A stretch of DNA of 64,000 nucleotides from Orbicella franksi (GCA_964199315.1 OZ116712.1:11718001-11782000); one strand, 5' to 3'; shown: positions 1,502 through 50,800, numbered from the stretch's first letter. A program made the numbers and translations. The notes: a model not told the origin generated them from the sequence alone.

Positions 1502-4500
1502 GGACTTAAAACCTCAGAACCTGTTGATTAACGAAGTTGGAGAACTAAAACTAGCTGATTTTGGTGAGCAATGAGATGTTTCTCTAGTAGACTGTCACAA
1601 TTATATTAAAGTGTATATGACATGACAAATAATTTCTGCTTACTAGAAAGGCCTTTCAAAATACAGAAGAATGGTGTTTTTCTTTTTGAAATATGTTTTT
1701 TTGTTTTAGAGATATTGATGTTTGTCTGTTATGCAAATTAAAGCAGTGACGACGTCATATTGTTTGCAGCTAAAAAATGGTAAATACTGAATAAACAATA
1801 TCCCTAGAAATATTGAAGCAGTGTTCTTGAAACTTGGCACCACAAATGTACTTCACAAAAGAAACAAAATGACACTGTTGCCATAGCCACTCTTTCAGCT
1901 CCAGTCTCTTTCTGTCAAAAAACCCAAGTTTAATATCCCCATCTGTAACATCTAAAGTGAGACAAAGGGTCCTACTTGGAACAGACATAGTTCCCATATT
2001 GTCTTAACTCCCATCATTAGATTGGGTGGGGTAGATGGTTCTTGGTTTAAGACAAAAACTGGGAATTTCAGTTTTTATTAAGACAGCACCAGCAGCAAAA
2101 CTGTTGTCATAGCAACAGCCCTAAGGTTATCATTTTGTTTCTTTTGTGATGCACATCAATTTTGTGGTGCCAAGTTTGAAGAACACTGCTTCAATATTCC
2201 AGAGATATCATTTATTCAGTATTTTACCACTTTTTAGTTGCAGATCTTATGACGTCATCACTGCTTTAATTTGCATGACAGAAAAATGTCAATATCTCTA
2301 AAATGAAAAAAGATATTTCAAAAAGAAAAATGCCATTCTTCTGTATTTTGAAATGCCTTTCAAATAAGCAGAAATGATTTTTCATGTCATACACACTTAA
2401 AACAAATGTCGCAGTTTAGTCTCATTCCAAATTCTGTTACAATCAACTCTCTCTAAAGCAGCCACTATCTGCTCAACTCCAGCTGACCACCTAAGAGAGT
2501 TGTTTGCCTTCTTGAATTAATGTAATTTGACACTATAAAAATACTGTAATTTTAGAACTGGAACAAGATCTTACAATTCGATAATCAGTTAAAACACACA
2601 TGGATATCTTCATTTCTTTGACCGAGTGCCCTTTTCTTGTTACATGAAATTTTGGTCATTTTACCACTTTTTGTATTTATATCCTTAACCAGAGTTCTTT
2701 GAATTTTGTCATATTTTTTCAAGTAGTAGTCATCTGCTACACAAGGCCCCTGCTGAAACCATGCTAGTGCTGAAAGGATCACCCTGCTTAAATAAAATTG
2801 ACTTTCACTCTCACTGATTTATTACTCACAAAGCCAGTGCAGCCCAAGGGATAATAATATTTCTCTGAAGCATCTCATTTTGGGGTTGTGAGCCCATATG
2901 AAATCACAAGTAATTGCTGCTGACATTTCAAGGGTTGGCATGGTATGCTTGTTCAGGAATGGTGGATGTATTTTGTATGGTTTTGAAGCCTTTTTTAGGC
3001 ACCAACTTGTCAGACTGTTTGCGTTTACACCAAACAATGTATTTAGGGTTCAATCAGTAAATTCATGTTCGAAAACCTAGGAAAGATAATACAATGTTTT
3101 TGTCACAGTAGCACTTATAGTTAAAATTAAGGGTGTCTTTAACAGGTTGTACTGTTACGGTGATATCCTGTTATAGCATGGAACACAACTTGTTCACTGA
3201 CGATTAGGCATTTACATGACGCCAATATTGAACATCGCCTGATGAAGAGTCGTATCATTCATCCATAAAAGTACAACTACTAGAAAGTGCTGCCCAGAGT
3301 CTGTTTCCAGTAAACTTGATTCTTTCCTAAGTCATTCCTTCTTAAGTCTTTCTTTCCTGATTTCAATAATTATTAATTCTGTATAACTTTAATACATTGG
3401 TAGTGGTAATTTTAAAGTGATCAGTTACTGAACCCTATTAAAATCCCGATGACATGTTCCTTCACCAAATGTTTATGATAAATTTCATTTACTTAACTGA
3501 TAATTCATATATTGTTCTACTATGATTTTTTGGATACAACCTACCATTTTATGACAATTAACCCTTGATTATACTGCCTACATGTAGGTTTGGCCCGTGC
3601 CAAGTCAGTTCCTAGCCATACATATTCACATGAAGTTGTCACACTATGGTGAGGAAAAAAATAATAATCATTAATTTTTAAATTACCTCGCTTTACCATC
3701 TAATTTAAATTACCTTTTACCAATTCTTTCATCAATAAAATTTATGTATGACAGAAAGGAATTCTATACACTGTCCATTTTTGAGAATGCCAACGATATC
3801 CTCTGTGAACATGGGCTCATCATGCACAGAACAAAATTCCATAATTTTGTCCTATGAATAACCGGCAATCTTTCATCTTTTGCTGTTGCCAAGTTCCAGA
3901 AACCACTGCAGTACTTTAATTCACCTTTGCAGTCTATAAATATCAAAGGTACTTGATGTGAATGTTGATATATGTAGGCATGTATATTAAGTCTGAGTTT
4001 TTAATTATTCCAAAACAATTTGTGCTGCAATTTACAAAGCACACATCAAGTCTTGGATAAAGTCAACGTTGGTTTGATTCTGCATATTCTTCACAGAACT
4101 TCACAAAATTTTTGTAGTTTTTAACAAATAGTGGAAAAGTCAGAATTCAAGTCAAGATTAAACTGAAAACAAAAAAGTATGATTGCGCATGAATGTTTCA
4201 CATGACAAAACAGATGCAGACATAGTTTGCGCATACACAATAGGAAATCGAAAACAGTTAAGTGTTTGTAAAATTACAATTCAAGAAGCTGAAAGACCAG
4301 CTCTTATAGTTTAGGTTTATGAAAGTTGTTGACAGCAACAACAGCAAACATTATTCTTTACAATAACTGGCCTCTTCCAGCCCAACAAACTTATTCCAAA
4401 GTTTGTGCTGGAAAAGGAAATAAATGCCCCATCCTTAATAACTGCTCCCTTTCTGATAAGTGCCTTCTGCATACTTAGGCTATGAAAAGTAAATTAAGAA

Positions 4501-7500
4501 GAAATTGGTATTATTGTATATTTTGGGATGCATTGAAATCAATATAATTATACTTGCGTGTTGATTTCCTGATAATCTTTTATTATTGCATGTTAGGAGA
4601 GAATTGATTTGTCTTTTCTACAGCATCTTTATGGTACTGGAATTTCTTCTCCTATCTTGGGGGCATAAAATATAGCAATTCTCTGCTGTATTCTCTATGT
4701 TATTCACTCATCCAAGTCTTGCTCAATTGGTCATACCCTGCCTGACATCACCTTAACATTGTCTTGTTGAGTCAAATATCATGATTATTTGCTGATTTTT
4801 AGGTATCGACCTCCAGATGTTCTTCTTGGATCAAAAGATTACACAACTTCATTAGATATCTGGTGAGACTGAGGAAAGGTTTTAAATAAAACATTGGTTC
4901 ACTTTTGAATTTTCAGTATTTATTGTTAATTATTATAATGTTATTATAAAATATGCAGCTGTGTAGTTGATCCTGAACACTGCAATACCACAAAAAAAAA
5001 ATCGGTAAACATCGCAATTTTGCAAAAAAAATTCACCAAATACCGCAATACTTCAATACTTCAATACCAAGTCAAAACTTTAGAGCAAATATAGCAATTA
5101 AGAATTTGCAGGGCCCTGGAATTTGTTAATGAACATGAAGTTAGGTTAATTTCTATTTAGACAACATGATCAAAACAAGTAACTTCCATTACCCTTTTCT
5201 GATTGCAACACAAGGAATTGCAGTTTTCTGTTACCATGAGAGCTAAGTTTCATTGGGAATGTCCAATCAGAAACTGGAAAAGGCTCAGAAAACATTGGAG
5301 GACTTGAAGGATAATTTCTAATACCGTCCAAAATGGAAAAAAAAAAAAACGAAAAAAAAAAACACGTCCCACAGGTTTGGAGAATACTGCTATACTACAT
5401 TTCCAGATTATAACTACTGAAATACCATAAGAAAAATTGTCCAATACTGCAATACCACAAACCCCAATGTCCCCCTCTTTCAGGGTAGTTTTCAGGAAAC
5501 TAGATTATAGTTACCATAGTCAGGGTTACCATACATACACATACAAACATACACTTTATCTAACCTTGGATTTAATAAAGACCAATGATAAAGGAATGAA
5601 GCATGTCCATACTCTTTAAATATAAAGTATAACAACAATTCAGGGATGTACACTGACTGCATGTCATCCATTTTTAACAGATCTCCATTCATTCAAATGG
5701 TTTCATGCCTGCCATCAGTTAAGAGACAAAAATTCACTCTGGAAACCATTCCTTATATACTACCTGCCCAAAATGAAATGAGTGAAATCTGTTGGCCTGT
5801 AAGTTTATTTCTTATCAAATATCAAAAATGGCTTTGACCCACCAAACACAGAGAATGAGTTATGAAACAGTGGTAATTTTGAGACTACTTTGCTAAGTTC
5901 TTAATAGAGCTAGAGAGGGAAACAATATTTTGTATTGTAAAAGCTTATGAAATATTATTTAAAAATTCGGTTATCCTCTTCAGGAAGCTATCTGTTACTG
6001 AGGCTGCTACAGGTGGTAGTTCTGAGGGGCTAGCAGTAATCAAATGAAGTTGCAATTTGCATGGTTGAAGTGGAAGCCTACACCAGCACTAAAAATTATT
6101 GTTTGTACCCTTTAAAGACCAGAACTGCCAAACTGAGAAGAGCATGAAATTTGTGACAGTACTATAGCTAATTAGAGATTTTTAAAATTTGATGACTAAG
6201 CAGTAATAGTGGAATTCTACTGGTGTGCTAATACTATTGGGTTATTCCAGAAAAAATCCATAGACCCTGATGCCCAGTGAATGGGCACATATTGTAAGCC
6301 CCCCCCCCCCCCACCTCCTACCCAGATTTCACGAAGTGCTAGGCCCCTCCCCCCCACCACCGGCCTCTGGATTTCCAAGGCAAAATACCCCTCCCGCCTG
6401 GATTTCCAAAAAATTTACGAGCCTTAAATGTAATTTATTTTCTATAAAATTATATGCAGACATCCAGACGATGCTCTTGTGTAATTTCTAAAGCTTAAAC
6501 AAATATTAAGCTTACAATTATTCTTTGGAACTCAATAAAGCAAGCTTATTAATGTGAAAAAGTTTTTGGACTCTCTTTAAATATTTAAAAAAATATTTGA
6601 GTATTGTGCGGGATTTTGCAGAATTGGAGAGTTGTGCATTATGTATTGCAACCAAGAGCGTGTCGCCATGCTTACTATTTGAAAAACAATCCGTTCTTGC
6701 GGATTTTACATGACTGTATGTAGACTGTACCAGACCAGTGAATTTTGAAACTCTTTTCTATGACAGCTATTTTTGTCAACAGTTACGTTTAGCAGAGCAT
6801 TGGGCAATGGTATGACAATACAAATAGTGTCAGATGTTACACACTCCTAGTGATCTTTGTTTCGACAGCTAGGTTTCTTCATGCTTGTCCTTTTGTCACG
6901 TGTTTTCTGCATGTTTACTGTGATCATGGAGAAACCTGTGTAGGTAACTTGACGTATCTCAGGAAAGAAAGCCATGAGAACTGAAATACTTCAATTTTTT
7001 GAGTTATTTTTTTGTAAAAAAGAATACTTCTTAGTGGGCATGTCGGGTATGTTATGGACGGGTCAATGGATGAGTGAGTGAGAGATGTATGTATGTCACA
7101 CCAATCAGATTGGATCTACTATAAACAGCCAGTCAAATTTCTTGTTGTAAAGGTAAATGGTATGTGAGAAGATTTGATCCTGATACAGTTCAGAACGGCC
7201 ATATTTATTCTTCTATAAAAGAGGAGGGAGTATTCATATATTGGGCCTACTTCAACATTTTCTGTGGGTTAGGCTGAGGATTTTGTGGGCAGGTTTGATA
7301 ATCATTTGCTACTGGATAATCAGTCAAAAAAACATAGTGTTTGGCATATAACTACGAGCATGCGATGAAGGGTGAGCTTTTCCCATTAGATAAGTTTTTG
7401 AATTGAGTCTTAGCCACTTTACCACTAGGTTTAAGATGTGAATGAAAAACAAGTTGATGTGCATGGTTTCTATGATAGGATCAATTGTATTTTAGGGGGG

Positions 7501-10500
7501 CGGAATGCACTACTGGGAATGTGAAGAGGTTGTGACCAGGTTAAAGTCATTTGCGTGTTGTATTGAAAACCTAACTATTGCTGCAGAGTTCGTAATCTTA
7601 TGAGTGTTCCGGGCATGCCATTAATTTCAGCATCCACTGATAAGTTTCAATGTGAAAAGCGAAGAGACTACGATTAATTTGGTCAACAGAAGGAATGGTT
7701 CTTGCTGACTTCTGGAATGAGAAGATACGTTTTAATGAAACTAAATCTTTTCTCTTCAATGTTATCAGGGTTTTGCTTATTCACGTTAATAACTAACACG
7801 AATTGTAGTTGAAGAAAAAGGAAATTATTTTTGTTCAAGATAACTTTAGTGAGGTATACGAAGTCTTGAGCGTTTTATTGTATTAAACACAAGGACTTTG
7901 GTAATTGAAAAATAAAGACTGACATGTATGTTGCCAGTTTGATTTTTAGTCCGGGTTTGGAGCGGAGTGTGACAGTTACATACATACATTGGCCAGGGTT
8001 GTTTTAGAGTGCATGATGTTCAGTGTAATGGTGGCTAGTTATGAACGAGATGAGCCTTGAGTTTTGAAACAGTTCATGAGTTAGTAGTATGCAAATGAAA
8101 CGAGATATTTTTATTTTTAGTTACAAAGGTAACTTGATACTTTTGTTTTTCACAAGGAGTAAACTCAAATAGAGGTCATGAATCATCGCTTCTAGTTCTT
8201 AGGACATGTTTTAGAGGAGACAAGACTATTTAAATTTGAAACAGTTCTAGCATTTACAATGAAGTGCAGGTAACGATTGTTTTGTTCTTGTTGCATGGAA
8301 ATATAACGAGATATTTTTATTTTTTAGTTACAAAGGGTAATTTGACACTCTTGTTTTTCACAAGGGTGTAAATTCAATTAGAGCTGACGAATTGTCGCCA
8401 CTTGTTCCCACGAGATGTTTGCTACCTTTAGTTACAAATGGTAACTTAACACTTTCGTTTTTTATATGGGAGTAAATTCAATTAGAGCTGACAAGTTATC
8501 GGCTATTGTTCCCAGGATGTTAAACAAAAATGAAGCTTTCATTTCTGGACGGTTTTTATGTCTCTGCAGTGGCAGTTCAATATTTTTATTTGATGGGCAT
8601 TTTATGACATTCTTTTCAGTTCAGGTAAAAAGTATGAAAACTGTTAAAATGTTCTTTGAAGACTGTGTGGCACCAAGTTAAAGTGCAATTTAATTAAAAC
8701 AGACTTTCAATGTGTCAGAGAGGTTTTTTTTCTCATTCTTTCTACTTTCAGTGAAGTAGTGTTGTTGCATTGTGTTGTATAAAAAGAGTAAACTTATGAC
8801 TCATATAAAATGTGAAAAGTTCTCTTAAGGTCGGTAATACGGGCAACATTTTTCTTCAACTTTTCTTGCAACTTTGTTGCATTGCAAGTTGAAACCCTCT
8901 ATTGTGCGTATTACCACGTTTGTGACCAACTTGTCTTGGAGCAAAATACAGTGTTGCTAGTCTGCAGAATTCTTCTTGGTTAATCGTGTGTAATTAAAGA
9001 TGGCACCTTCTTTCCTATAATTTAGTGTTTCCACGAACTTCCACTTTGACTTCTTGCCGTCATTTTGTCCTTGATTTTCCGTGCCAACGAAGTTCTGTCA
9101 GTATGAAGCTCAGTGTCATTTCAGATAGCTAGGCGAAAAGTTGTATTTTTTGTGACAGTTCTTCCACGCCTTTTGCCTTTTTTGCTGCTTGTTTTGAAGG
9201 GCCAAACAACACTGACTATGATAGCCCTTGAGGTCTTTGTACAGGGCAAATTTCTGACTTTCCAAGAGTTACTCGTCTACTTCGAATTCACCCTTGTCTT
9301 CACTGTCCACCATGTTTGTTATGTTTGCTGCGTTGCCGCGCTTCACGACAGTCAATCACAAGCGTTGAATTCAAATTTGTTGCGAGACAAGTTGTAGCTT
9401 CAGTGGTAATACGAGAAGCAAAACTAAAATTTGTTGCAGAAAGTAGAACTTGGATGCTTACCATTTACAGAAACCATCCGGTTGGAAATTTCAGGCAAAA
9501 ACATTAAACAGTTGAATACCACGTTGCGAGAGAAGGAATTGCTATAAAGTATATCCACATCACCTAGAGAGACTTAGAGCAGAAAATAGCATCACCTCAA
9601 ATCACAGCCCATATTTTCAGAAGCTTCCCAAATGGAATGGCACGAACCATTTGATTTTCCAACTGGAATTTACAGTTTTCCCATGTAAATGGTAAGTACC
9701 CCTTGAGTCTACTTTGGGCAACATGTTGCCCCAACTTGCAACACTGTATTTTGCTGCGAGACAAGTTGGTCACAATCGGGGTAATACACGCAACAATGTG
9801 TTTCAACTTGTAATGCAACAATGTTGCCAGACAAGTTGAAGAAAAATGTTGCCTGTATTACCGGAAGTAGTGTTTTTGCGTTGTGTTGTGTACATGTAAA
9901 AAGAGTAAACTTACAACTCATATAAAATGCGAAAAGTTCTCTTAAGGACGTTTGCACTAATTGTTTCTGCGCATCCTAACTGTGCACGCAAATTCACATG
10001 CCACATCATGCATCAAGCGCACGCACTATGTACTAAAATGAACAATGATAGGGCAGATGGCCATTGCTATTGCTTTGCGTGGATTTAACGATCTTGAACA
10101 TTCGGTGACCCCTACTTTTCTTACCAGAAACAGATTTTATTTACAATTATCGCCACATTGTCCAAAAATGGAAAAAAATCAATGTGGGAAGTTAAAAAAA
10201 TTTCAAGATATCTGTCCACAGGGCATCGAATCCTGCCATCTTGCGGCTGCAAGGCATGTTAAACTATGGTCACTAAATGTGAACTTGTTCTTTAAGAAAC
10301 CTCGTCAGTTGACTAAATTCACTTAATAGGTCCACTTAAACAATACTTGGCAGAGAACATTTCACTTCAAAGATCTAATTGCAGTATATTTGAGCTTACA
10401 AACACTGTGGCCTTATTCGCTAATGAAGCCTGATTTTTTCAGATTTAGGGTGTTCTTCCGGGCATGTTCCCTCCAAAACAAAGTCAGTGACCCCCCATTT

Positions 10501-13500
10501 TTTTGCCTTTTTGGCAAAAGTAGATCAGTACCTTTCTGTGTGGGAATATTTTGGGCACGAACATCCTTAACTTGAGTATTTTTGAGCAAAAATTCCTCTT
10601 AGGGGTTGGAACGGCTATGTGATCGGTGAGTGAGGGTGTTATGCATGTGCGCGTGTCACACCAATCACAGTGTGGGTTGTATCAAAGAATGAATCAAACT
10701 GTCTGTTAGAAAATAAGATGGTATCTACATTAATCTGGAGATGTTTCAGATTACTGTAGTTTTTTCAGTCAAACATTTTATGGCTTACTATTTAGTTATC
10801 TCACCATTACCGATGTAACATCATATGTCCATCATAAATTCCCAGTTTCTTTCTTGCTGTACATTGTACATCGCAACCAAAAAAACTTGTCAAATAAACC
10901 AAATCATTACTGTAAACAGTTCTATGAATGCTCCTATCTCCGAGACTTTTAGTTCACAAAAACAATAACTCTTGCATGCCTTGCGTGCCTATGTTTTCAA
11001 ATTCAGAGAGTGCTCAAGTGTCACATGTTACACATCTAAAAGTTCGAGGTTACCAGAACATTCAGTTGGAAATGATCCCTGAAAAAGATTTTTATGTTCA
11101 AAGCCCCATTTGCAGGGATTTTCATGGTATTTGACACCTTGTTCCAAGAGAATTTCAAGGAACCCTTCCATTGGTGGGGGGGAGAGGGGGGATTTTTTCT
11201 GGAATGACCCATTGCTAAAATATGCGTGCCTGAGTTATTGTATTGTTTCAGCCATTAATCTGAAGTTGGGGTACATCATCTACAAAATGGCAACATTTTT
11301 TCTTTTGTACACAGTATCAGAGTAAAATTTTGAAATACCACTGGGTCAACTATTCCAGCAACTAAATCAAAGTGCTCTATGAGCAAACTCAAGAATTTCA
11401 TAGTGAATGGTGATTGATAAGAGCTAAGGTTTGTGTGACGTGAAATTACTCTTTTCATGGAAAAAAAATGATGTTTAACAGCAGAAAAATTATGAGAAGC
11501 AAAAATCAAAGCTTTAACTGGAAATAATTATTCTGAAACTAAACTTTCACAAAGATCATTTCTCAAGACTTCATGTCCACAGCAGAAAGATATTTAAAAA
11601 CTTTTGAACCAACACTGTTATACAATTTTAATAGAATAAACCAACCTTTTCAAGACTTGTCTTAAACCTGATGTACACCTGAACGATTGAGATTAACACT
11701 TTCCCTGACCAACAAATGAACCAGAAATTTTACCACAATGATCTGGGTCGTTTGAACTAACAGTTACAAGCTGTCATTAACACACTATTAACAACCATTT
11801 AATTTGACTTATTTGAAATAACAGTTCCATTTTTAGCACAACACTCCCACTTACATAACCCATTATCCCAGAGATGTCAAATGAATCAAACAGCTTCTCC
11901 TTATAATTATATGGAATACTGGTCTGAAGAACCATCTCTGGAGGGAATGTAAACATTGAACAGTTCAAATATAAAAGTAAGTTACAGTATGATTTATTGT
12001 TGCTTCATGAGGTAAATTTGTAGTTGTGTTTGGCTGGCCAAATTCTCTTGACCTTTGCAGCGACACTACATGTAATTTGATTTCCAAACACCTTCAGAGA
12101 GAAGTCATAAGTGTTGTACACAAAAACCACGAGTAGAAATTTTGGTTGTTACATTGCTGGACTTAAGATCACATTGTAAACTACTTTATCAGCACGATAA
12201 ATAGGTGTACACAAAAAGGAGATAAGCATCACAAGACACCGACAGATTTCTAATTCTCACAGAGGCCCTCTGCAGACAACAATTCTAGATTGGACTCAAG
12301 CAACAATAAATCATAGTTATCTTCACTGTTTTTACTTCAAATTCAAACTTGATGAAGAGTCTGCCATTGCCAACATTTTCCCCTAGTGTGCATGTGTGAA
12401 TCCATTTCTGTTAACCAGTATTCCATGAAAGTTGCTGCTGTTTGATTGGCAGAAGTGTATTACAAAGAATGTTTTGATTTGAAGGTTGTGTAGTCATATT
12501 TGTATAAATGAAATTTGGAAAAGCACTGCTGAGACTTTTGCCCTGTTATTATGATTGTTGTCCCTGTTGTTATTTATCGACATTCAAATTCTACTTTGAA
12601 TGTTGATAAATAACTGAAGATGATTATTAAAAGAAAATAAAGATATTCAACTCTCAATTTCTATGAAGTCTTTCTGTGCATTGACTATCGTTTCATTAAA
12701 ATCTCGAGCATGATCTCATCAAATAATTTATGAACAGTGATTAATGCTGGTAATTCTGGCTTTTTGCTTAGGGGTGCAGGATGTATTTTTGTAGAGATGA
12801 TAACAGGAATTGCTTTGTTTCCTGGAACAGGAGATTACATTGCCCAGCTCAATAAGATATGGCAGGTAAGAAATGATTCCTTTGTAACATCCTGAGAATG
12901 GGTAGATCTAGATCTGTATGGGCAGAAATAAATTGAAGAAGGGAAATGAAGCTATGTGAGTTATCACATTACAAAACACTTCCAGTAAGTGGGACAAGTG
13001 ATGGTGGTCATCTTGTCTGCTAAATGTAAACTTGTGTGTAACATATGGATATGAAATCAATCCAGACCATCATGTATTTGATTAAGAAATACAGAAACAG
13101 ATTGTCTGTCAGCACCAGCGATGAACAGAGAAGCTTGTTATAAACTACAGCTATGGCAGACTGTAAGACCTCAGGACCAAGCTATATTTTTAATTTTAAC
13201 ACCCGACACTTAACAATTACGATAATAATGCAAGCTACTTAACAATAAACAGTATCAATTGGCGCTGAACACTGTGCTTGATGCTTACTGGTAGCACTAT
13301 TGATATGCCTGGGAACACCAGGAATTCACATTTAGCACTTTTGATTTGTTTTTTCCTGGCACAAATGGCTCCTGATATTTGCAGGCACACATTAGAAGGA
13401 CATATGGGAAGAAAATTATTCCAAGCAAGAGAAACAGGAACAGAAATGTGTCTCTTGTTTAATATCAGCAATTAAATTTGCAGGAGATTCCAATACAATG

Positions 13501-16500
13501 TTGTAGATTGCACACTTGGGGCAGAGATGAAATCACTCGCAATTTTTACCGGTGATTTGAATCGCTCATGAATACACGTAATGACCGTACAAAATCGCAT
13601 GATACATGCATATCCCAGGCTTTATGAATGTCCTTGCTTAACAGAACATTTTCATTCAATATTGTGTTGGGTTAGCATCTCTCAAATTTGATCATTTAGC
13701 CAAGGCTTTAGGGGATACCCACAACCACTGAAACTACTTGAAGCCTGAAATCGGGGTCTGCAAACTCTGCATTTGACAGTCTTGTTGACTTACAACATTA
13801 AATTGGACTGTGGACTTGCATTTTAATAATATGTTTCTGTGTTGAGATAATTCTTTTCAGAAAATGCAGATGAAAAATCAGTGATTTGAAGGTATATGGT
13901 AACCTTAGAGAAGCTTTGGTTATAGCTTCTTGTAATTTTTTCACTTTAAAACATTAGTTTTTTATATGAGGGGGGTGATTTCATATTACACAGAGGTTAG
14001 CTCATATCAGATATCATTCACTGCTGGGAAATTCATGCATTTGCTCATAGAACACTTTGATTGTTTCTCTTGGATTAAGATTGCAGGAACAGCAACAGAA
14101 GAAACATGGCCTGGAGTGACCAGATTTCCTGAGTATAATGCAGGTAATGATCAGTAAACTTTGCCAAAATTGCAGCGATTGTGGGTGAATTTTTAGACGC
14201 TACTCATTTATTTTGAATTTATAGGCAAAGCCCTGAAATACCCATGAAAAAGCCATCAAATTTAGGAATTGTTTTTCATAGCCTCTTAGTGGTTTTCATG
14301 GTGTTGTAGTTCACAGACTTTTCTTGAGGCACTGAATTCATGGCCATGAAAAAACCATGGCTATCCATTAATATTAAAAAATTTTAATGTTAATAGATCA
14401 TGAAAAATTGGTAATTCGATGGCCTTCAACTATTTTCATGGGGTAAACAAGAAACACATAGACCATAAAAACTACATTAAAATAGTACGTGACCTCTGGC
14501 CTCAAAATCATGGTAATTCAAGCACCAATTTAAAATAAATTATGAAATATTAATTACGAATTGGTTGGTACACAGGACTACAAGGCATGTATCTTTGGTT
14601 GATATAATTGACTTTATTCAACCCTTTCAATGGTGTTTAAGGTTACTCCAAACTTTAGCAGGGATACTCTTGCCAATTGTGTGGTTCCAGAAAATATCCA
14701 TATCCCCCATGGAGGGTTTTTTCCAGTTTGACCCCCTGCCCCCCAGGATTTTCTGTTCCAGGGGACTTTACAGTACTCCTCCCAGCCCCTGGAATTTCCA
14801 TGATTTTTCTACTTGGGTCCTCTACGCCTTAAGCTTCAAAATTCCATATCCATAAATAACAAAGTTTAACTTAGTTTAGCTATAAGTAATTAATTTATAA
14901 GTAACATGCCTTGTTTCCGTTAATTTAGATTTGTTTGTGGACTTTCCACCTCAACGACTTGGCATTGTTGCTCCAAAGTAAGTGGTCAAATTTAGAATCT
15001 GTACTTTCCATTGTTGTAAACAAGAATGATCTCTCTAACCCTGGTTCTTGGCTGAAGGAAGGTAAATTTAGAAAGCCTTGGGTGTGTTTTGTCTGTACCT
15101 GAGAGAACTAAGAAAATTGTTTAGGAGCTCAAAAACTGGAAACTTGCACGCATCATTACAGTGGTACTGCAATGACACATCACTGTACTGACATACCCTT
15201 AAGTTTCTTCTGATGTGAATATTGATCGTGAGACAGGATAGAAACACAAATATGAAAACTGAGACAAGCAGCAATGGTGGCAGACCCAAATTTCTAAGCT
15301 TTGCGAGTGGTCTCAAATTATTCATGTAAAATGACAAGGGCCATGTAAAGTAGGAAAAGTGCAGCATGGTGCAAGTGAGACGAAATGAGCACCTTAAGTA
15401 AGGAGCAATTGGCATTGTTATACCCCCCAACTCAAATATGTTTCCTGATTGGAGAACATGTCACATGTGATGAGTTGAAACTCGCTTACTCCCTAGGGGG
15501 AACAAAACTCATTAAGTCCTAGGGAAACAACAGCTTGAACTTTTGACTTGCACGTGATCAGGTTGTGCACCTTCAAACAGCAGAGAATTTGTGTGCTGGT
15601 CATCCTGATGTCAAAAAGCTATGGAAGTTGGGCCATGTTTCTCACTAGATACATCCTTGGAGATCTAGGGGCTGCTAGTTGGGACGAATATTTTGTGGCA
15701 AGCGACATTTTTGGGCGAAAGTTTACAACAAGAGCGAGAGAGCCCCTGGGCACTTACTCTTACAGAACCAGTTCCAGAAGGATTTGAATTCCTTCCACTG
15801 ATGGATAGCGTAGACGTGGATAACGTAATTCTTTAATTATGCGACTCATGTGACCACTTTGCTAGCCCTTTACTCATGGAAAAACCAATTGAATTTAATC
15901 ATGACTTTTGAGAAAGAAAGCTGTAGTTAATAGTGTTATTGTCATAATTATCATTCGTATCGTTCATGCCCATACATATCCCGAAGAATGTTCCAGATTA
16001 AGACCATTACATCATTGGAGATATTACAACGGCTAAGAGCAATGGTGCAATAATACGGTTTGTGTTGACCAAGTGATGTGGTGTCTACAGTAATCAATGG
16101 ATCATCAAGGACTGCTTTCGAATGTGCACTATGTTGCGACTGTAGTGCTAAGAAAACAGAGAAATTTTAAAAATGCAGTTTTAAGATCTAACAGATCTTC
16201 TGGTTTTGTTCTGTTCCATCATGGATAGTGTATGTTTTGAAACTAGTGCCAATGTTCCCAAGTTTTGGCTTCTTATGCAACCTCATTCCCTGGGTCTCTC
16301 TTCTTCACACCCCCTGAAGTAAAGAAAGAGAGAGGGTGAGAAAAAGAGACCCCCTGGGAACAAGTACATGTAAGATAAATACATTTCTTTATACATTGCT
16401 TTTGCACAGTGCTCTCACTTCTTTATTTACTTGTTTACTTATTTGCGTTAATAACTACATACACCCATGTGTGTACATATGTAGGCTTATCTGTAGTATA

Positions 16501-44800: not shown

Positions 44801-47800
44801 TGCTGAGGAAGGACGTTAGAAATTCTGATGGGGACTAGCACAGTTTCAAAACCCAAATCTGGAATTTCTGAGTGGTGGGGGTTCTTCTCAAAAAACTTCC
44901 CTGGGAAGGGTTGGCATGTTTTCTGGAATTTTGTACATCTAGTGTTTTTTACAAAAGTGCTCCCTTGGCTGTAGAATATTGAGTCATTTAAAGTGTGACA
45001 AGACGAGTAGGTCATTGACACCTCCAAGCTTTATAACTACTAGTCTTTGAAGCATGTCTACTTCCCCTATTAAAAAAAAGCTGCAACTGGGATAGCAATC
45101 TTGAGGCGAAATATTTCATGTTTAATTGCCACTAAATTTGTCATCCATGAGTTAATCTTTCTCAAATGAGCCATCCTTGTTTACAGTGCCGCTCAAAAGT
45201 AAGTCACCACCTCTCGTCTTGTGAGACAAGAGTCTCATCTCAAGAGATGAGAGACTGGTCGCGCAAGACCAGAGTCTCGTCTTGTGAGAACCAATGAAAC
45301 GTATATTTTGGAATAAATTACAGGCAATTGGCTTCCGAGGAAATAGTTAATTTCTCACAACGCATTTGTTGCAATGTATGCTTCGAGAAGTTCCCGATAA
45401 TACAGCGTCTTGAATTGAAACTTGCTTCGCTAGATTCAACACTGTCATTACAAACGAAGAACTTTAATGGATTGGAGTTATGAAGAAAAGAAGTTACAAG
45501 TATGAAGAAACAAACACCAAGATGTCAGCGAACTATTGTGTAACATTGCATCACACTGGTTGGTGAAATGTTCTACATGTAGTTTTAGGCTTTTATTGTG
45601 TTGAATTTCCATGTTACATGCGTGCAAGCGAATTGAAACGAAACTGTGTTTTGTAAGATCGGTACTATCGCCAGAATTAAACAAGCTGATTCGTTATGGA
45701 AAGCGCTTGATAAAGTTTCAATCTTTCTCCGATTACTCAGAGTTATTCCTCGGTGCATTGAATTTGCATTTCATGCCTGTGTGAGTCCATTGAACTGGAA
45801 CTCATTGTTTTCTTTACAGATAAAAAAAATTAAACTTGATCACATAACAAATTGAAAATGTGACTACACATTGTTTCATAACAAACACATGTGATTGGGA
45901 AAGACGTGTCGAAAGGAAAGGATTCTTTACGGCGACCAGAAAATTTGAAAGAAGTATTTCTCGCCAAGCTAGGCTATAGGCAGCAAGTGGAATGGGGCTC
46001 TTCATATAAAAAGATTAGCTGAGAAATATAGTTCAAAACTGAGCAAGTGAATGGGAGATGGGAATATTAATAAAACGTTACTCCAGTTTTGTAATACATA
46101 TTTATTACTATTACAATTTATACAGTATACTGCTACTAAGTGTAATACTTAGAATTATTGTTGATATACTACTACTTGTTACAACCAAGTGTACATGTAA
46201 TACTAAAAATCCTAAGCAAGCATACTATAAACTGTTTCATGTCCTTCAAGGTTAATACTAATAAGCAAAAACCTACAAATTTTTCGTATGACAATATATT
46301 TGAAAACATAATAAGTCAATAAAGCATGTGACAATGACAGATAAAGAAATTTTTCCTTGGAGAAAACATGTAGTTCAAACCAAATAAAATCCTGCAATTC
46401 AGCAAACTTAATTTCTAATTAACTACCTTTTCATGAACCCTACATTTCCCAAAAATTATTGTTGCCTGTTACCTTTTCCCAGTGCCCTGCGTAAATACTC
46501 GTCTATCGCGACAATGCACTTGCACCATTGTGCATCTTCCTGTGCTTGTCTGCAAGGATACAACTTAAACACATACTTTCTAACTATACCCAGCTTCCCT
46601 TGATCTAATAGCATTTCCCCCCTTGTCCCTGAACAATTTATTTCAGCCGTCCAGTCCCCAGGTTGAAAAATAGTTTCAACAATTCTCTTGCCAAGCTGAG
46701 TTTCAGACGCAAATGGGAACAGCCGAAGTTCAAGGGTCGTGCGAAACATCCCTACAAAGTCCATGTTTGGACTGGGATTTCTAAACGCGGTGCAACAAGG
46801 GTCCTTGTGTTTACTGGAAACATGCATGGACATCAAGTTTTACGTCAAAGAAATTCTCGGCAGAACCCTGCTTCCTTTCATCTGAGCAACATTTCCTGAC
46901 GGCCACAGATTCCAACAAGACAATGACCGGAAACACACTAGCAGGCTCAGGTGAAAGAATTCATGAAATCAAGTGGGATTTACTGGTGGAAGATGCCTCC
47001 CGACAGCCCTGACCTCAATCCCATAGAGATGCTATGGCATGAGCTAAAACATTTTCTGCAAACAATAGTAAAGCCCACAACTAAAGAGCAGCTACTCGAA
47101 GGAATAACGAGGTTCTGGAAGGAGAGGGTGACGGCTGAAAAGTGTACGATGTACATCAATCACTTGAAGAAGGTTGTCCCAATGGTGATCCAGCACCAAG
47201 GCCTTAGGGCACTGAAAACAAAACGGTTCTTTTTGAGAACAACAATGGCACCTTTAGGAGCCACATTCAATAAAAGTCATGACCAATGCAATCCAATCTC
47301 TTCCCTTCAAAAAACCCCTGTAAACTACTTTGAAGTATTCATACTACATGTTAGTCTGTTGATTCCAAATTCACTTAATTGTTGAATTTGCTTACATGTA
47401 GCAAGAAAGTTAAAGTCAGTTGAGCAATCTGAAACGGAAAAAAAGAGATGCTTTCAAAGTATAAACTGGCTTCCTATAAGTTTTACATGTGTTAGCAGAC
47501 GTTTAAAAGTCAAAGAACTAATGCTTTATTTTATCGAATTCTGTCAAAATCTGTGAGGGAGTTCAGTCGATCAATGGAATGCTTTTGGAGAATGCTAGGA
47601 CGAAACAGAAGTCTTTCAAAATATGGAAGAGGAAGAGCTTTATAGAAGTTTTAATTGCAAATGTTTATCCAGTCAAAAACCAAAAATTAACTGCTGTTGG
47701 TTATAAAATTTGTTTGTCGACCATACGTGGCAACAAACCACTTCTGTTCAGTCGATCAATTGAAACTCTGGAAACAAATGACGCTTTTAAAGTGCCTATG

Positions 47801-50800
47801 AAGTAAAAATAATTCCTGCTTATTTCAAAGTCTTTTCAAAGTAAAAAAGAATGGCATTTTCTTTTTTGGAATATCTTTTTTCGTTTTAGAGATACTCACA
47901 TTTTTGTATTATGCAAATGAGGAAAGTGATGACTTCGTAGGCGGTTCCTCTAAAACAGCACAACACTCAATCGAGAATAACTCTAGAAATATTCAAGCAG
48001 TGTTCTTCAAACTTGGCACCAGCAATGTACATCACAAAAGAAACTGAATGACACCTACGATGCTGTTGCCAAGGCAACACTCTTGGCTCTAGTCTCTTTC
48101 TCTGAAAAACCAAATATCCCCATTTGCAACCTTTTAAAGTGGGACAGAGGGTCTTACTCAGAACACACATGGTTCCCATATTGTCTTAACTCTCCCCATT
48201 AGATTGGTGGGAGTGGATGATCCTTGTTTAAGATAAAATCTGGGAATTTTAGTCTTTATTAAAACAGAACCAGCGGCATAACTGTTGTCATGGCAATGGC
48301 ATGACAGGTGTCATTATGTTTCTTTGTTCTGTACATTTCTGGTGCCAAGTTAAAAGAACACTGCTTTAATATTTCTAGAGTTATTCTCGATTGAGTGTTG
48401 TGCTGTTTTAGTGGAACCACCAATGACGTCATCACTTTCCTTACAAAAACGTAAATATCTCTCAAACGAAAAAAGATATTCCAAAAAGGAAAATGCCATT
48501 CTTTTTTACTTTGAAAAGCCTTTCAAATAAGCAGCAATTATTTTTTACTTCATAGGCACTTTAAACATGATCTAGATTTGAAAGAGTTCATAAACAAATG
48601 TTTACCCAGTAAAAGAAGCACATTGTAGTCCCTTAAATTAGTTGTGTTACTGAACACGCTAAGAAGCAAAGAGTCAATAACGCCTGTTGATCATCGATCT
48701 AAATGATCAATTTCGTCGACCTTGAAAATGTGAATGACACAAAAGCCAAGAACTGGCTGTACATATTTGCCTTCAAACATGAAACTGTTAAATATTTTCA
48801 TCACTGCTTTCTTCCAGGTCTACAAACCTTTCTAAATGACCGGTAAAAGTCAAGTTAATAACTTCAATATCCACAACTTTCGCTTTATATAATTGCCAAA
48901 AGAGGAAAACTTTCTTCGTACAGGTTTAAGCACTTTTCCTTAAACCCATGAATGACGTGAATTCCATTTAAATTAGAAAGCTTTGCAGCATATTCTTGGA
49001 TACGATTTTTGAGCCAAGTAGATTTGAAAAGTTTAAGAGTCAAATCTCAAGTGATTGTAATAAACAAACAACAGAGTTAGGCAAACACTTCGTTGGAGGG
49101 CACGAAGTTATGCTTGGCTAATTCTCTGCGTGCTTGCAAGTTCGCATTACAATAGGCTATTAAAATCTTGCGAGAAATTCAAGCAGTGGCGCTTACAGTT
49201 TTTTTAAGCTCTCGCAAGATGAGAATCTCGTCTTGCGAGATGGTGGTAACTTTTGAGCGGTACTGTAGTTTTGTCTTGTTAGACTGATTTCTGTGTAGGA
49301 AATCAATGTTTTCAGAGTCTTATTTGTGAGAAAATCATTTGGGTAGCCTTACTACTTTTTAGGAGCATACATGAGTGCAGAGCAAAACAAAAACAATCAT
49401 TATCAATAAAATTTAGGTACTTGTTGATGCACCAGCAGTAGTTTGTTAGTTCCTCGTGATCGTGGTGTGTTATTTCAATTTTGCAAACAGCTGTGCTGAG
49501 GGAATGAGGAATCGTGCTTTAAGTGGTCTTACAGGCACTGAGCACCCTCCCTTGGATCAACGGAAAAGTTCTTTGGCTTTCAAGGACATATCAGCTAACA
49601 CTATTGCAGAGCAACTAACATATCTTGAGTACAGAATGCTTCGTAGAATACCAGTAAGTATGCACATTTTGTATACAACCTGATGGTTTGTTTTCTCATG
49701 TTAAAATCTCAACTCTTCTGTAGGTTAGTATTTCAGTTGGCCCTCAGTGAGGTTAGTCAATGCAAGCCCTGAGTTCCAAACTCATTGAAACATGTTTAGA
49801 CTGCTAATATTTGGCCTCAACTCAGGAAAATGTATTCGTAAATGTACAAATAGTATGGTGATTGGAGACAAAAGAAATTTATAACCAAGACAACATATAA
49901 CAACATTTCCAGGGTTGAGGCTTCTACTGGATTGGTAATGGTGGTGCTCCTGTTTCTCAAAGATGGACAGTTTGGTTACTTGAGAAACCTCTTAAGTATG
50001 TTTTTTTTTCATCAGTGTTTATTTATTTTACTTAATACCAAAAAATAAATAGTGGTAAGCCCAGGCTAGCACTCATAGGAGACCACTGAGAAGATGAATG
50101 TATCAATCAGAATGTTCTGTGGGCTTGATGTGTGACATTTTCGATGGAGACCTTTATAGATTTTATTATCAATGTGGCTTGTGTTTGTGGCTGATATAAT
50201 GGTCATCCTGATTGGCTACTGCCAAGAGCAGTATTCTCCTGTAATGCCCACAGGCCGATTACAGGCCTGCAGAAACAAAGTAAAAAGCCATATAACAAAC
50301 TTTGAACTTTCTGTCTTTACCGGAAAGTCTCAAACCTTGGCCTTGCCGTGTTGACCTCACTATCACTCAATCAGTATATGGCAAGGTCTCGGTTTGAGAT
50401 TTTCCTATAAAAACTTCACTCTTGGTTTAATTGGTAGTTAATATGTAAATAACATTATTTATTAGTTTTCAGAGTGGAAGACTTATGTTTGCACTGGAAA
50501 ATTAGGGGAAACAACTTATCTTGAGAGATATGTAGCTCTTTTCAATGGCTTATCGCGTTGGGTACAAGCAATGGTTTTGAACTGTGTTACACCCCAGGAG
50601 AGAGCTTCCTGTATGGAAAAGTTTCAGCAAACAGCCAAAGTAAGTTATAATTTTCTCTTAAACAATCAGATACCCATACTCAAATACCTGGAAAAGCAAC
50701 TTGAAGTTCACGGTTTTGTGCAGTGGGGTAGGCAATCAAAAACCAGGTTGAGTAATGTTGACAGGGCATTGCTTAAGGTAGCACAGGCAACTGTTTCCCT

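Follow-up and report, generated by a model that had tools for sequence, protein, structure and literature searches.

A relic of a Tc1-like transposon in Orbicella franksi and its two-gene relatives with a Tudor-like/BEN partner gene

Tc1/mariner elements are the textbook minimal transposons, having a single gene and no need of host factors, and they are widely used as gene-transfer tools. A 64,000-nt stretch of the Orbicella franksi genome (GCA_964199315.1, OZ116712.1:11718001-11782000; hereafter the window) contains at positions 45184-49265 a TA-flanked element of 4082 nt in which the remnant of a Tc1-like transposase gene meets, in opposite orientation, a fragment of a BEN-domain gene. This locus therefore raises the question of whether the BEN gene is part of the transposon and, if so, what it might do there. 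The analysis presented below indicates that the element is very probably a non-autonomous, decayed copy (a relic) of a cnidarian (stony-coral type) DD34E Tc1-like family whose complete members carry two genes, one for the transposase and one for a Tudor-like/BEN protein. All coordinates refer to the window unless a locus with an L number is named.

The element in the window

A preliminary description of this DNA had delimited a TA-flanked element bounded by terminal inverted repeats (TIRs), and both ends and both TA dinucleotides could be read directly. The left end consists of TA followed by CAGTGCCGCTCAAAAGT (45184-45200), the right end of ACTTTTGAGCGGTACTG (49249-49265) followed by TA, and the 17-nt cores of the two ends match at 16 of the 17 positions. 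When up to three mismatches were allowed, this core was found at only two sites in the 64 kb, which are the two ends of the element, the number expected by chance being 0.13. Beyond the core, a weaker likeness between the ends extends about 60-100 nt inward and includes short palindromic sub-repeats. The similarity to other copies of the family breaks off 1-4 nt from the termini, the flanking DNA being unrelated, and nothing outside the termini matches the relatives. Both marks of the ends of Tc1 elements were recognized, i.e. inverted ends that start with CAGT (in the window, where 16 of 17 positions match, and at loci L011 and L008) and a TA on both sides (in the window and in L002, L005, L007, L008, L011 and L015).

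The minus-strand peptide had been taken for a BEN domain, and on its own it scored 17.7 bits against Pfam BEN (PF10523), below the cut-off of 23.2. An exhaustive HMMER search with this piece retrieved 129 homologues, up to 76% identical, in which the match was always C-terminal, and Pfam BEN was found in all ten of the homologues scanned (above the cut-off in nine). Relatives no more than 61% identical to the window piece passed Pfam BEN (P0003, 31.6 bits; P0006, 39.6; P0011, 43.3; L008, 27.3; L011, 30.1), and a profile built from 12 element BEN domains matched the BEN4 domain of BEND3 (structures 7w27 and 7v9f-i) with an E-value of 4e-12 over positions 3-82 of 89. By this transitive homology and the match to BEND3 BEN4, the assignment of the predicted minus-strand peptide to the BEN domains is settled.

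The transposase remnant on the plus strand had been described as DD34E-type, in agreement with both its Pfam match and the spacing of its catalytic residues. The last piece of the remnant matched DDE_3 with an E-value of 1.5e-6 and a score of 28.6 bits, which is exactly the cut-off. The second D (46919-46921) and the E (47026-47028) are separated by 35 codons and by 2 nt that are inserted in comparison with the intact L007 gene, which gives the DD34E spacing; in the L002 and L011 transposases the E likewise stands 35 residues after the D (DNDPKHTS...SPD(L/M)NPIE). The remnant shares about 94% mean column identity with the L007 gene and departs from it by a 4-nt insertion (46821-46824), an in-frame TGA (46883-46885), the 2-nt insertion just mentioned (46948-46949) and a 5-nt deletion after 47200, and it lacks the first catalytic D and the helix-turn-helix (HTH) domains. 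The transposases of the full-length relatives have 339-340 residues with the domains HTH_Tnp_Tc3_2, HTH_32 and DDE_3, which in L011 scored 32.6 bits (cut-off 31.5), 32.3 bits and 52 bits, respectively. Their best solved match was the catalytic domain of Sleeping Beauty SB100X (E-value 1.2e-19), and their nearest named relatives, about 50% identical, are proteins annotated as 'Tcb2 transposase' in Exaiptasia and Paramuricea. The placement within the Tc1 family is a sequence-based one drawn from these two matches, 'Tcb2' and SB100X, and the predicted enzyme of the full-length relatives is an ordinary Tc1-family transposase that retains its own DNA-binding domains.

The preliminary description had both genes deprived of their 5' halves and meeting at about 46685. 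The first statement holds for the transposase and falls short for the BEN gene, of which the window keeps 78 of about 463 codons, about 83% of the coding sequence being gone. As to the meeting point, the BEN-side and transposase-side homologies, defined by local alignments to L001 and L007, overlap by the 6 nt TGCCAA at 46689-46694, close to the position proposed. The window is collinear with L001 from the terminus through to the BEN exon (45182-46694, 81-88% identity), and from 46689 on it follows the L001 and L007 transposases and then the L007 3' region to the other terminus. Relative to L002, the missing middle amounts to about 2.9 kb (approximately L002 5335-8190) and comprises the HTH domains and first D of the transposase, the stretch that separates the two genes, and some 385 codons out of the 463 in the partner gene. 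A central deletion of a head-to-head element with loss of the shared promoter region, as had been suggested, is thus the history to which the full-length relatives point, since they have the same termini and show this layout. The central 2.9 kb were lost in a microhomology-mediated deletion, after which a stop codon and frameshifts arose, CpG sites decayed and a miniature inverted-repeat transposable element (MITE) became nested in the copy. Internal deletion after interrupted gap repair is the usual fate of cut-and-paste elements.

Full-length relatives and their accessory gene

The relatives were found through contigs encoding the closest BEN homologues and then through contigs encoding transposase homologues. 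Complete members measure 6.3-8.2 kb, have inverted ends of the type CAGTACCGC... with duplicated TA, and carry an intact transposase gene head-to-head with a spliced Tudor-like/BEN gene. The L002 element extends from 3523 (+) to 9822 (-), with TA on both sides and ends of about 130 nt each, and its transposase open reading frame (ORF; 4974-5864, minus strand) faces the BEN gene (plus strand) inside the same termini. Because this ORF is cut about 45 codons short of the usual C terminus of the family, the L002 two-gene copy is probably not autonomous; the nucleotide similarity between L002 and the window runs past the L002 transposase stop, to 4739. At L008, a 7.2-kb element (3361-10545) flanked by TA, with an end repeat of 31 nt including the TA (94% identity), combines an intact 339-residue transposase with a head-to-head gene whose last exon passes Pfam BEN. 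The 8.2-kb copies L011 and L012 come from different samples and are 99.66% identical, both genes included, with perfect 26-nt TIRs, TA duplications and unrelated flanks, which indicates that the two-gene unit transposes as a whole and has done so recently. An identical 340-residue transposase is encoded on 14 contigs, and the L011-type copies, being young and having an intact 340-residue transposase and perfect TIRs, are the natural candidates for an active element.

The remaining copies form a series of derivatives. L009, L010 and L013 have exactly the ends of L011 and lack L011 positions 3904-7719, 3550-6725 and 3713-6756, respectively; they are three independent internal deletions and not empty sites. 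An intact transposase and only an exon-1 stub of the partner gene were found in L007 and L015, stubs of the BEN gene being kept also in L009 and L013, and nothing of this gene is left in L010. In L005 the family terminus and a TA come after the BEN gene. Downstream of BEN, L003 and L006 show subterminal repeats and then a degenerate or truncated end with no intact Tc1 terminus, and the L004 contig is too short to reach the element end.

These copies bear on the possibility that the BEN piece of the window is unrelated filler, either debris of a Sola1/EnSpm-type BEN element or host DNA acquired during gap repair, in a Tc1 lineage that has one gene. Such an origin would fit the sub-threshold Pfam score of the window piece and the occurrence of a homologous Tudor-BEN gene next to a DUF7869 protein at loci without Tc1 parts (see below), but the left TIR-to-BEN stretch is wholly collinear with L001, in which this TIR likewise lies beyond the BEN gene. 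Moreover, the full-length copies of three sublineages hold BEN inside the same TIRs, in the same place and in the same orientation relative to the transposase, and L011 and L012 moved as a single 8.2-kb unit. The filler or nested-debris reading was rejected on the finding of full-length two-gene copies, and we regard it as extremely unlikely. The preliminary description had suggested that longer copies with the same TIR might hold both full genes and had named an independent insertion of the BEN segment as the alternative. Both genes are indeed complete and head-to-head in L002, L008, L011 and L012, and an independent insertion disagrees with the constant site and orientation, with the differing deletion breakpoints and with the inverted-repeat scans and copy-to-copy comparisons, in which no termini of the BEN segment's own were seen.

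The partner gene itself was modelled at L002, where four exons (6433-6622, 6729-6856, 7265-7435 and 7530-8432), separated by canonical GT-AG introns with polypyrimidine tracts, give 463 codons in one frame, closed by a single stop. The first exon, with its phase-1 donor, recurs in conserved form in L008, L011 and the Exaiptasia locus L014, and the alignment of 34 homologues of exon 1 is good as far as the donor site and breaks down directly after it. In the BEN region the proportion of synonymous differences (pS, 0.6-0.95) exceeds that of nonsynonymous ones (pN, 0.24-0.5), and the ratio of nonsynonymous to synonymous substitution rates (dN/dS) was 0.13-0.36 where it could be computed and 0.51 between two decayed copies, the window and L001; since dS is saturated for most pairs between sublineages, only the comparison of pS with pN and these few dN/dS values are usable. 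Transposase and BEN divergences between loci agreed in rank order only. The in-frame splice model, the conserved exon 1 and donor, and a pS far above pN indicate that the predicted accessory gene is real.

Its predicted product has an N-terminal Tudor-like beta-barrel, basic stretches resembling nuclear localization signals, a predicted helical region, a low-complexity segment and the C-terminal BEN domain. Pfam recognized no family in the upstream exons of the accessory gene of L002, L008 and L011. An AlphaFold model of the 65 residues of exon 1 (pLDDT 81.3) formed a small beta-barrel whose best matches in the PDB and the AlphaFold DB were the Tudor domains of ARID4A/B and KDM4A/B, with TM scores of 0.63-0.69, root-mean-square deviations of 2.0-2.9 A and weak E-values of 0.03-0.1. 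Exon 1 is accordingly predicted, from its fold, to encode a domain that we call Tudor-like, and not Tudor, because of these E-values. A single relative of the BEN partner bears a name, an uncharacterized protein from the stony coral Oculina patagonica.

A real gene might nonetheless be a host gene that was passively captured and has no role in the life cycle of the element. This would be in line with the frequency of independent BEN-less derivatives with intact transposase genes, and in vitro the transposases of Tc1, mariner and Sleeping Beauty generally need no other protein. It agrees poorly, however, with the retention of the BEN gene at the same position while the transposases of the three sublineages diverged to 54-69% identity, and with the preservation of its reading frame, intron positions and splice phase at a pN far below pS. 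Furthermore, the youngest copies have the gene in intact form, another transposase-like protein has a homologue of it as a partner elsewhere, and the element ends carry arrays of a known BEN-protein motif. Taken together, these observations make a mere passenger improbable.

Three further features of the relatives were recorded. At L001, the transposase-side end of a second family element (13487-13762) lies about 1.5 kb past the BEN-side terminus of the first; as a transposase was not detected to the right of this end, the second element is probably another deleted copy. In L002, a 34-nt hairpin that is nearly perfect (97% complementary, 13-nt loop) occupies 4377-4457, in the region from the transposase stop to the terminus. 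In L011, a repeat of about 270-300 nt is present three times in the 1.6-kb intergenic region (6645-6917, 6959-7250 and 7588-7844; 72-81% identical), and tandem repetition with a period near 60 nt or a multiple of it is seen upstream of the BEN exon (4183-4603), where the array may be coding low-complexity sequence or intron.

End repeats and a possible role of the partner protein

The ends of the elements contain arrays of palindromic CpG repeats. L002 has four exact copies of the palindrome TCTCGCGAGA per end, and L007 has eight copies at one end and a single copy at the opposite end, with a 21-nt spacing in both; the palindrome was also found in L001 and L006. The window has five CpG-decayed versions (TCTYRYRAGA), all of them located in the two ends of the element, the expectation for 64 kb being 1.55. 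Where the BEN domain of a sublineage has diverged, the CpG repeats at the ends are different ones: L008 has arrays of TTTCGAG, and L011 has units resembling GCGTCAATCGCGAG. The motif published for genomic binding by BANP, a BEN protein, is TCTCGCGAGA (PMC10206803), and BEND3 BEN4 reads a CpG-containing site, binding to which is blocked by methylation of one cytosine (PMC11514455).

The accessory protein could hence recognize the ends of its own element as a sequence-specific DNA-binding factor. In this scheme, the palindromic CpG repeats spaced 21 nt apart (TCTCGCGAGA in the sublineage of the window) would be the target of its BEN domain, its Tudor-like domain would contact chromatin, and together they would either bring the ends together and recruit the transposase or keep the ends and the promoter open and unmethylated. 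Such a protein would be able to act in trans, so that copies without BEN could persist. The two-protein logic of PIF/Harbinger and En/Spm elements is established and was used here as an analogy for the mechanism: like the Myb-like partner of the former or TnpA of the latter, the partner protein may bind the subterminal repeats of its own element as an accessory or regulatory factor, a proposal for and against which we find the balance about even. The presence of the exact BANP-type motif at the ends makes binding to TCTCGCGAGA, and the sensitivity of this binding to CpG methylation, directly testable.

Several points weigh against the two-gene family as it is depicted here and against the role proposed for its partner protein. 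All full-length copies come from unannotated ENA metagenome-style assemblies, none being from the genome of the window itself; the genes that flank the relatives include those for MCM, MEKK4 and spectrin, which indicates that the hosts are eukaryotes, most likely animals. The four-exon, 463-residue gene model belongs to one copy, L002, and was predicted from DNA, and the Tudor-like assignment depends on a 65-residue model with E-values of 0.03-0.1. Copies that lack BEN but have an intact transposase gene are common (L007, L009, L010, L013 and L015), so that the element does not require BEN in cis and could perhaps dispense with it. Among solved BEN domains, the nearest is BEND3 BEN4 and not BANP, which the profile of element BEN domains did not match even at E-values up to 10, and the match of the end repeats to the BANP motif is therefore suggestive only. 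In addition, the transposase retains its HTH domains and could itself bind the end repeats, and the function of the accessory protein, including the self-regulation or anti-silencing put forward in the preliminary description, is a matter of inference.

The protein might also bind the element as a brake, that is, as a self-encoded repressor or as an insulator that limits transposase expression or shields host genes, and in this way lower the cost of the element. Most BEN proteins that have been characterized, among them Insensitive, Elba, BEND3, BEND6 and BANP (the latter in its original description as a protein binding matrix attachment regions), have been described as repressors or boundary factors (PMC10206803; PMC11601247), and a head-to-head arrangement with a shared control region would suit autoregulation. 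Nevertheless, the end repeats match the motif of BANP, a regulator of CpG-island genes that binds unmethylated CGCG (PMC11514455), and the motif arrays are situated at the termini and not in the intergenic region. The observations made here would fit activation and repression alike, and we consider a brake somewhat unlikely.

Tudor-BEN genes are not confined to Tc1 elements. Two homologues of exon 1, 62-65% identical, are located at L016 and L017, two loci without Tc1 parts. At L016, 51-nt inverted repeats (7513-7563 and 16004-16054) enclose a Tudor-BEN gene and a gene for a 579-residue DUF7869 (PF25273) protein, and at L017 (6011-14496) palindromic CCGTTCGAACGG arrays flank the same gene pair, the DUF7869 proteins of the two loci having 578-579 residues. 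The Tudor-like/BEN partner of these loci is homologous to that of the Tc1 family, whereas the protein paired with it, the termini and the end repeats differ, and the BEN domains share no more than 35-39% identity with those linked to Tc1. L016 and L017 probably represent a Sola-type element with a BEN partner. A further candidate was found in Exaiptasia diaphana (L014; GCA_001417965.1, LJWW01000188.1, 10001-21301), where a Tudor-BEN-type gene lies about 830 nt downstream of an annotated Tcb2-like transposase gene and in the same orientation; its first exon is a homologue of the Tudor-like exon, and its product matches BEN weakly. As the two genes lie on the same strand and no TIR of the coral Tc1 family was found at L014, this locus was rejected as a sea-anemone example of the two-gene layout.

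A broader, tentative reading of these loci would make the Tudor-like/BEN protein an exchangeable accessory module of unrelated cnidarian DNA-transposon superfamilies (Tc1, the DUF7869/Sola-like elements of L016 and L017, and EnSpm), in which BEN co-evolved with the palindromic CpG end repeats of each element, possibly in a methylation-dependent manner, while the Tudor-like domain contacts host chromatin. We regard this as possible and less probable than its opposite. Were it true, element-encoded BEN proteins would constitute a general anti-silencing or end-pairing device, and BANP and BEND3, which read CGCG-type motifs, could share ancestry with them.

Relation to known systems and map of the element

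The coral family resembles other DD34E Tc1 elements (Sleeping Beauty, Tc1, Tc3 and 'Tcb2'), with which it shares the TA duplication, the CAGT ends, a transposase of about 340 residues with paired-like HTH and DDE_3 domains, the DD34E spacing and the occurrence of internal-deletion derivatives. It differs from them in the length of its full-length copies (6.3-8.2 kb as compared with about 1.6-2.4 kb), in its second, spliced and divergent Tudor-like/BEN gene and in its ends of about 100-130 nt with arrays of palindromic CpG repeats. With PIF/Harbinger, which has a Myb/SANT-like partner, and En/Spm, which has TnpD and TnpA, it would have in common a separate DNA-binding protein encoded inside the TIRs and short subterminal repeat arrays. 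A second gene inside the TIRs that moves with the transposase, as in such two-component systems, was observed in L011/L012, and the same layout in L002 and L008. Unlike in PIF/Harbinger and En/Spm, the transposase belongs to an unrelated superfamily and keeps its own DNA-binding domain, and the partner is a BEN plus Tudor-like protein and not Myb or TnpA. The coral family is not a member of DD37E(L31), a Tc1/mariner family with a further ORF (ORF2), as its spacing is DD34E and its genes are divergent and not convergent.

The statement in the preliminary description that Tc1/mariner elements normally encode only a transposase is right for the usual state, the exceptions being the multi-ORF TBE and Tec elements of ciliates (PMC7325037). 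These are minor ciliate families whose extra genes encode a zinc-finger protein and a recombinase, none having been reported with BEN. The element protein shares with BANP and BEND3 a homologous BEN domain, and its C-terminal helix (...IDEFLRR) aligns with that of BEND3 (...IDERCRR); the BANP motif is carried by the element ends. In contrast to BANP and BEND3, it is encoded by a transposon and has a single C-terminal BEN domain after a Tudor-like domain. No description of a BEN-domain cargo gene in any DNA transposon was found in the literature searched, in keeping with the earlier suggestion that a BEN accessory gene in Tc1 could be undescribed. The coral two-gene lineage is a variant of Tc1 marked by its BEN plus Tudor-like partner gene, the transposase being an ordinary one.

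That a second, chromatin-type gene has been kept through a long diversification and is present in near-identical young copies suggests that some Tc1 elements need, or profit from, a DNA- or chromatin-binding partner of their own. BEN partners in what are probably Sola-like elements suggest that DNA transposons have resorted to this strategy repeatedly in cnidarian genomes that methylate their DNA, and element-encoded BEN genes bear on the origin of the BEN-domain regulators of animals.

The features of the element in the window are listed in Table 1.

Table 1. Features of the Tc1-like element in the window, from left to right, with the decayed end motifs in the last line
Feature	Position	Strand	Basis
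TA target-site duplication, left	45182..45183	.	direct reading; TA flanks also in other copies
Left (BEN-side) TIR, 17-nt core CAGTGCCGCTCAAAAGT then subterminal repeats	45184..45290	+	collinear with ends of L001, L002 and L007
Non-coding 3' of BEN gene, up to left end; stop codon 46456-46458	45291..46458	-	collinear with L001 11895-10760, 81-88% identity
Last-exon remnant of accessory gene, nearly whole BEN domain, 78 codons	46459..46694	-	Pfam BEN and homologues
Deletion junction, TGCCAA microhomology	46689..46694	.	local alignments to L001 and L007 overlap
DD34E Tc1-like transposase remnant, about residues 166-339 of 339	46689..47215	+	Pfam DDE_3, L007 alignment, tblastn
Non-coding 3' of transposase, part 1	47216..47785	+	mostly collinear with L007 9021 to about 9451; 47540-47649 without L007 match
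Nested foldback MITE, arms about 250 nt	47786..48565	.	inverted repeats; second copy; empty site in L007
Non-coding 3' of transposase, part 2	48566..49160	+	collinear with L007 9446-10149, 81% identity
Right (transposase-side) TIR	49161..49265	-	inverted repeats; decayed TCTCGCGAGA motifs
TA target-site duplication, right	49266..49267	.	direct reading
CpG-decayed TCTCGCGAGA motifs	left end 45217, 45280; right end 49166, 49210, 49231		

The DNA of the window within about 10 kb of the element was also scanned for Pfam families through its nine longest ORFs, with no match. The MITE nested in the 3' region of the transposase is 780 nt long, with arms that are 91-100% complementary, and is inserted at TTTAAA. 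Since its ends are palindromic, a target duplication of TA, TTAA or TTTAAA cannot be told apart. The uninterrupted target site is visible in L007 (9446-9451), and the insertion of the MITE is later than the element itself. A second copy, 76% identical, is found at 1606-2404 of the window, and the family thus has a length of about 780-800 nt.

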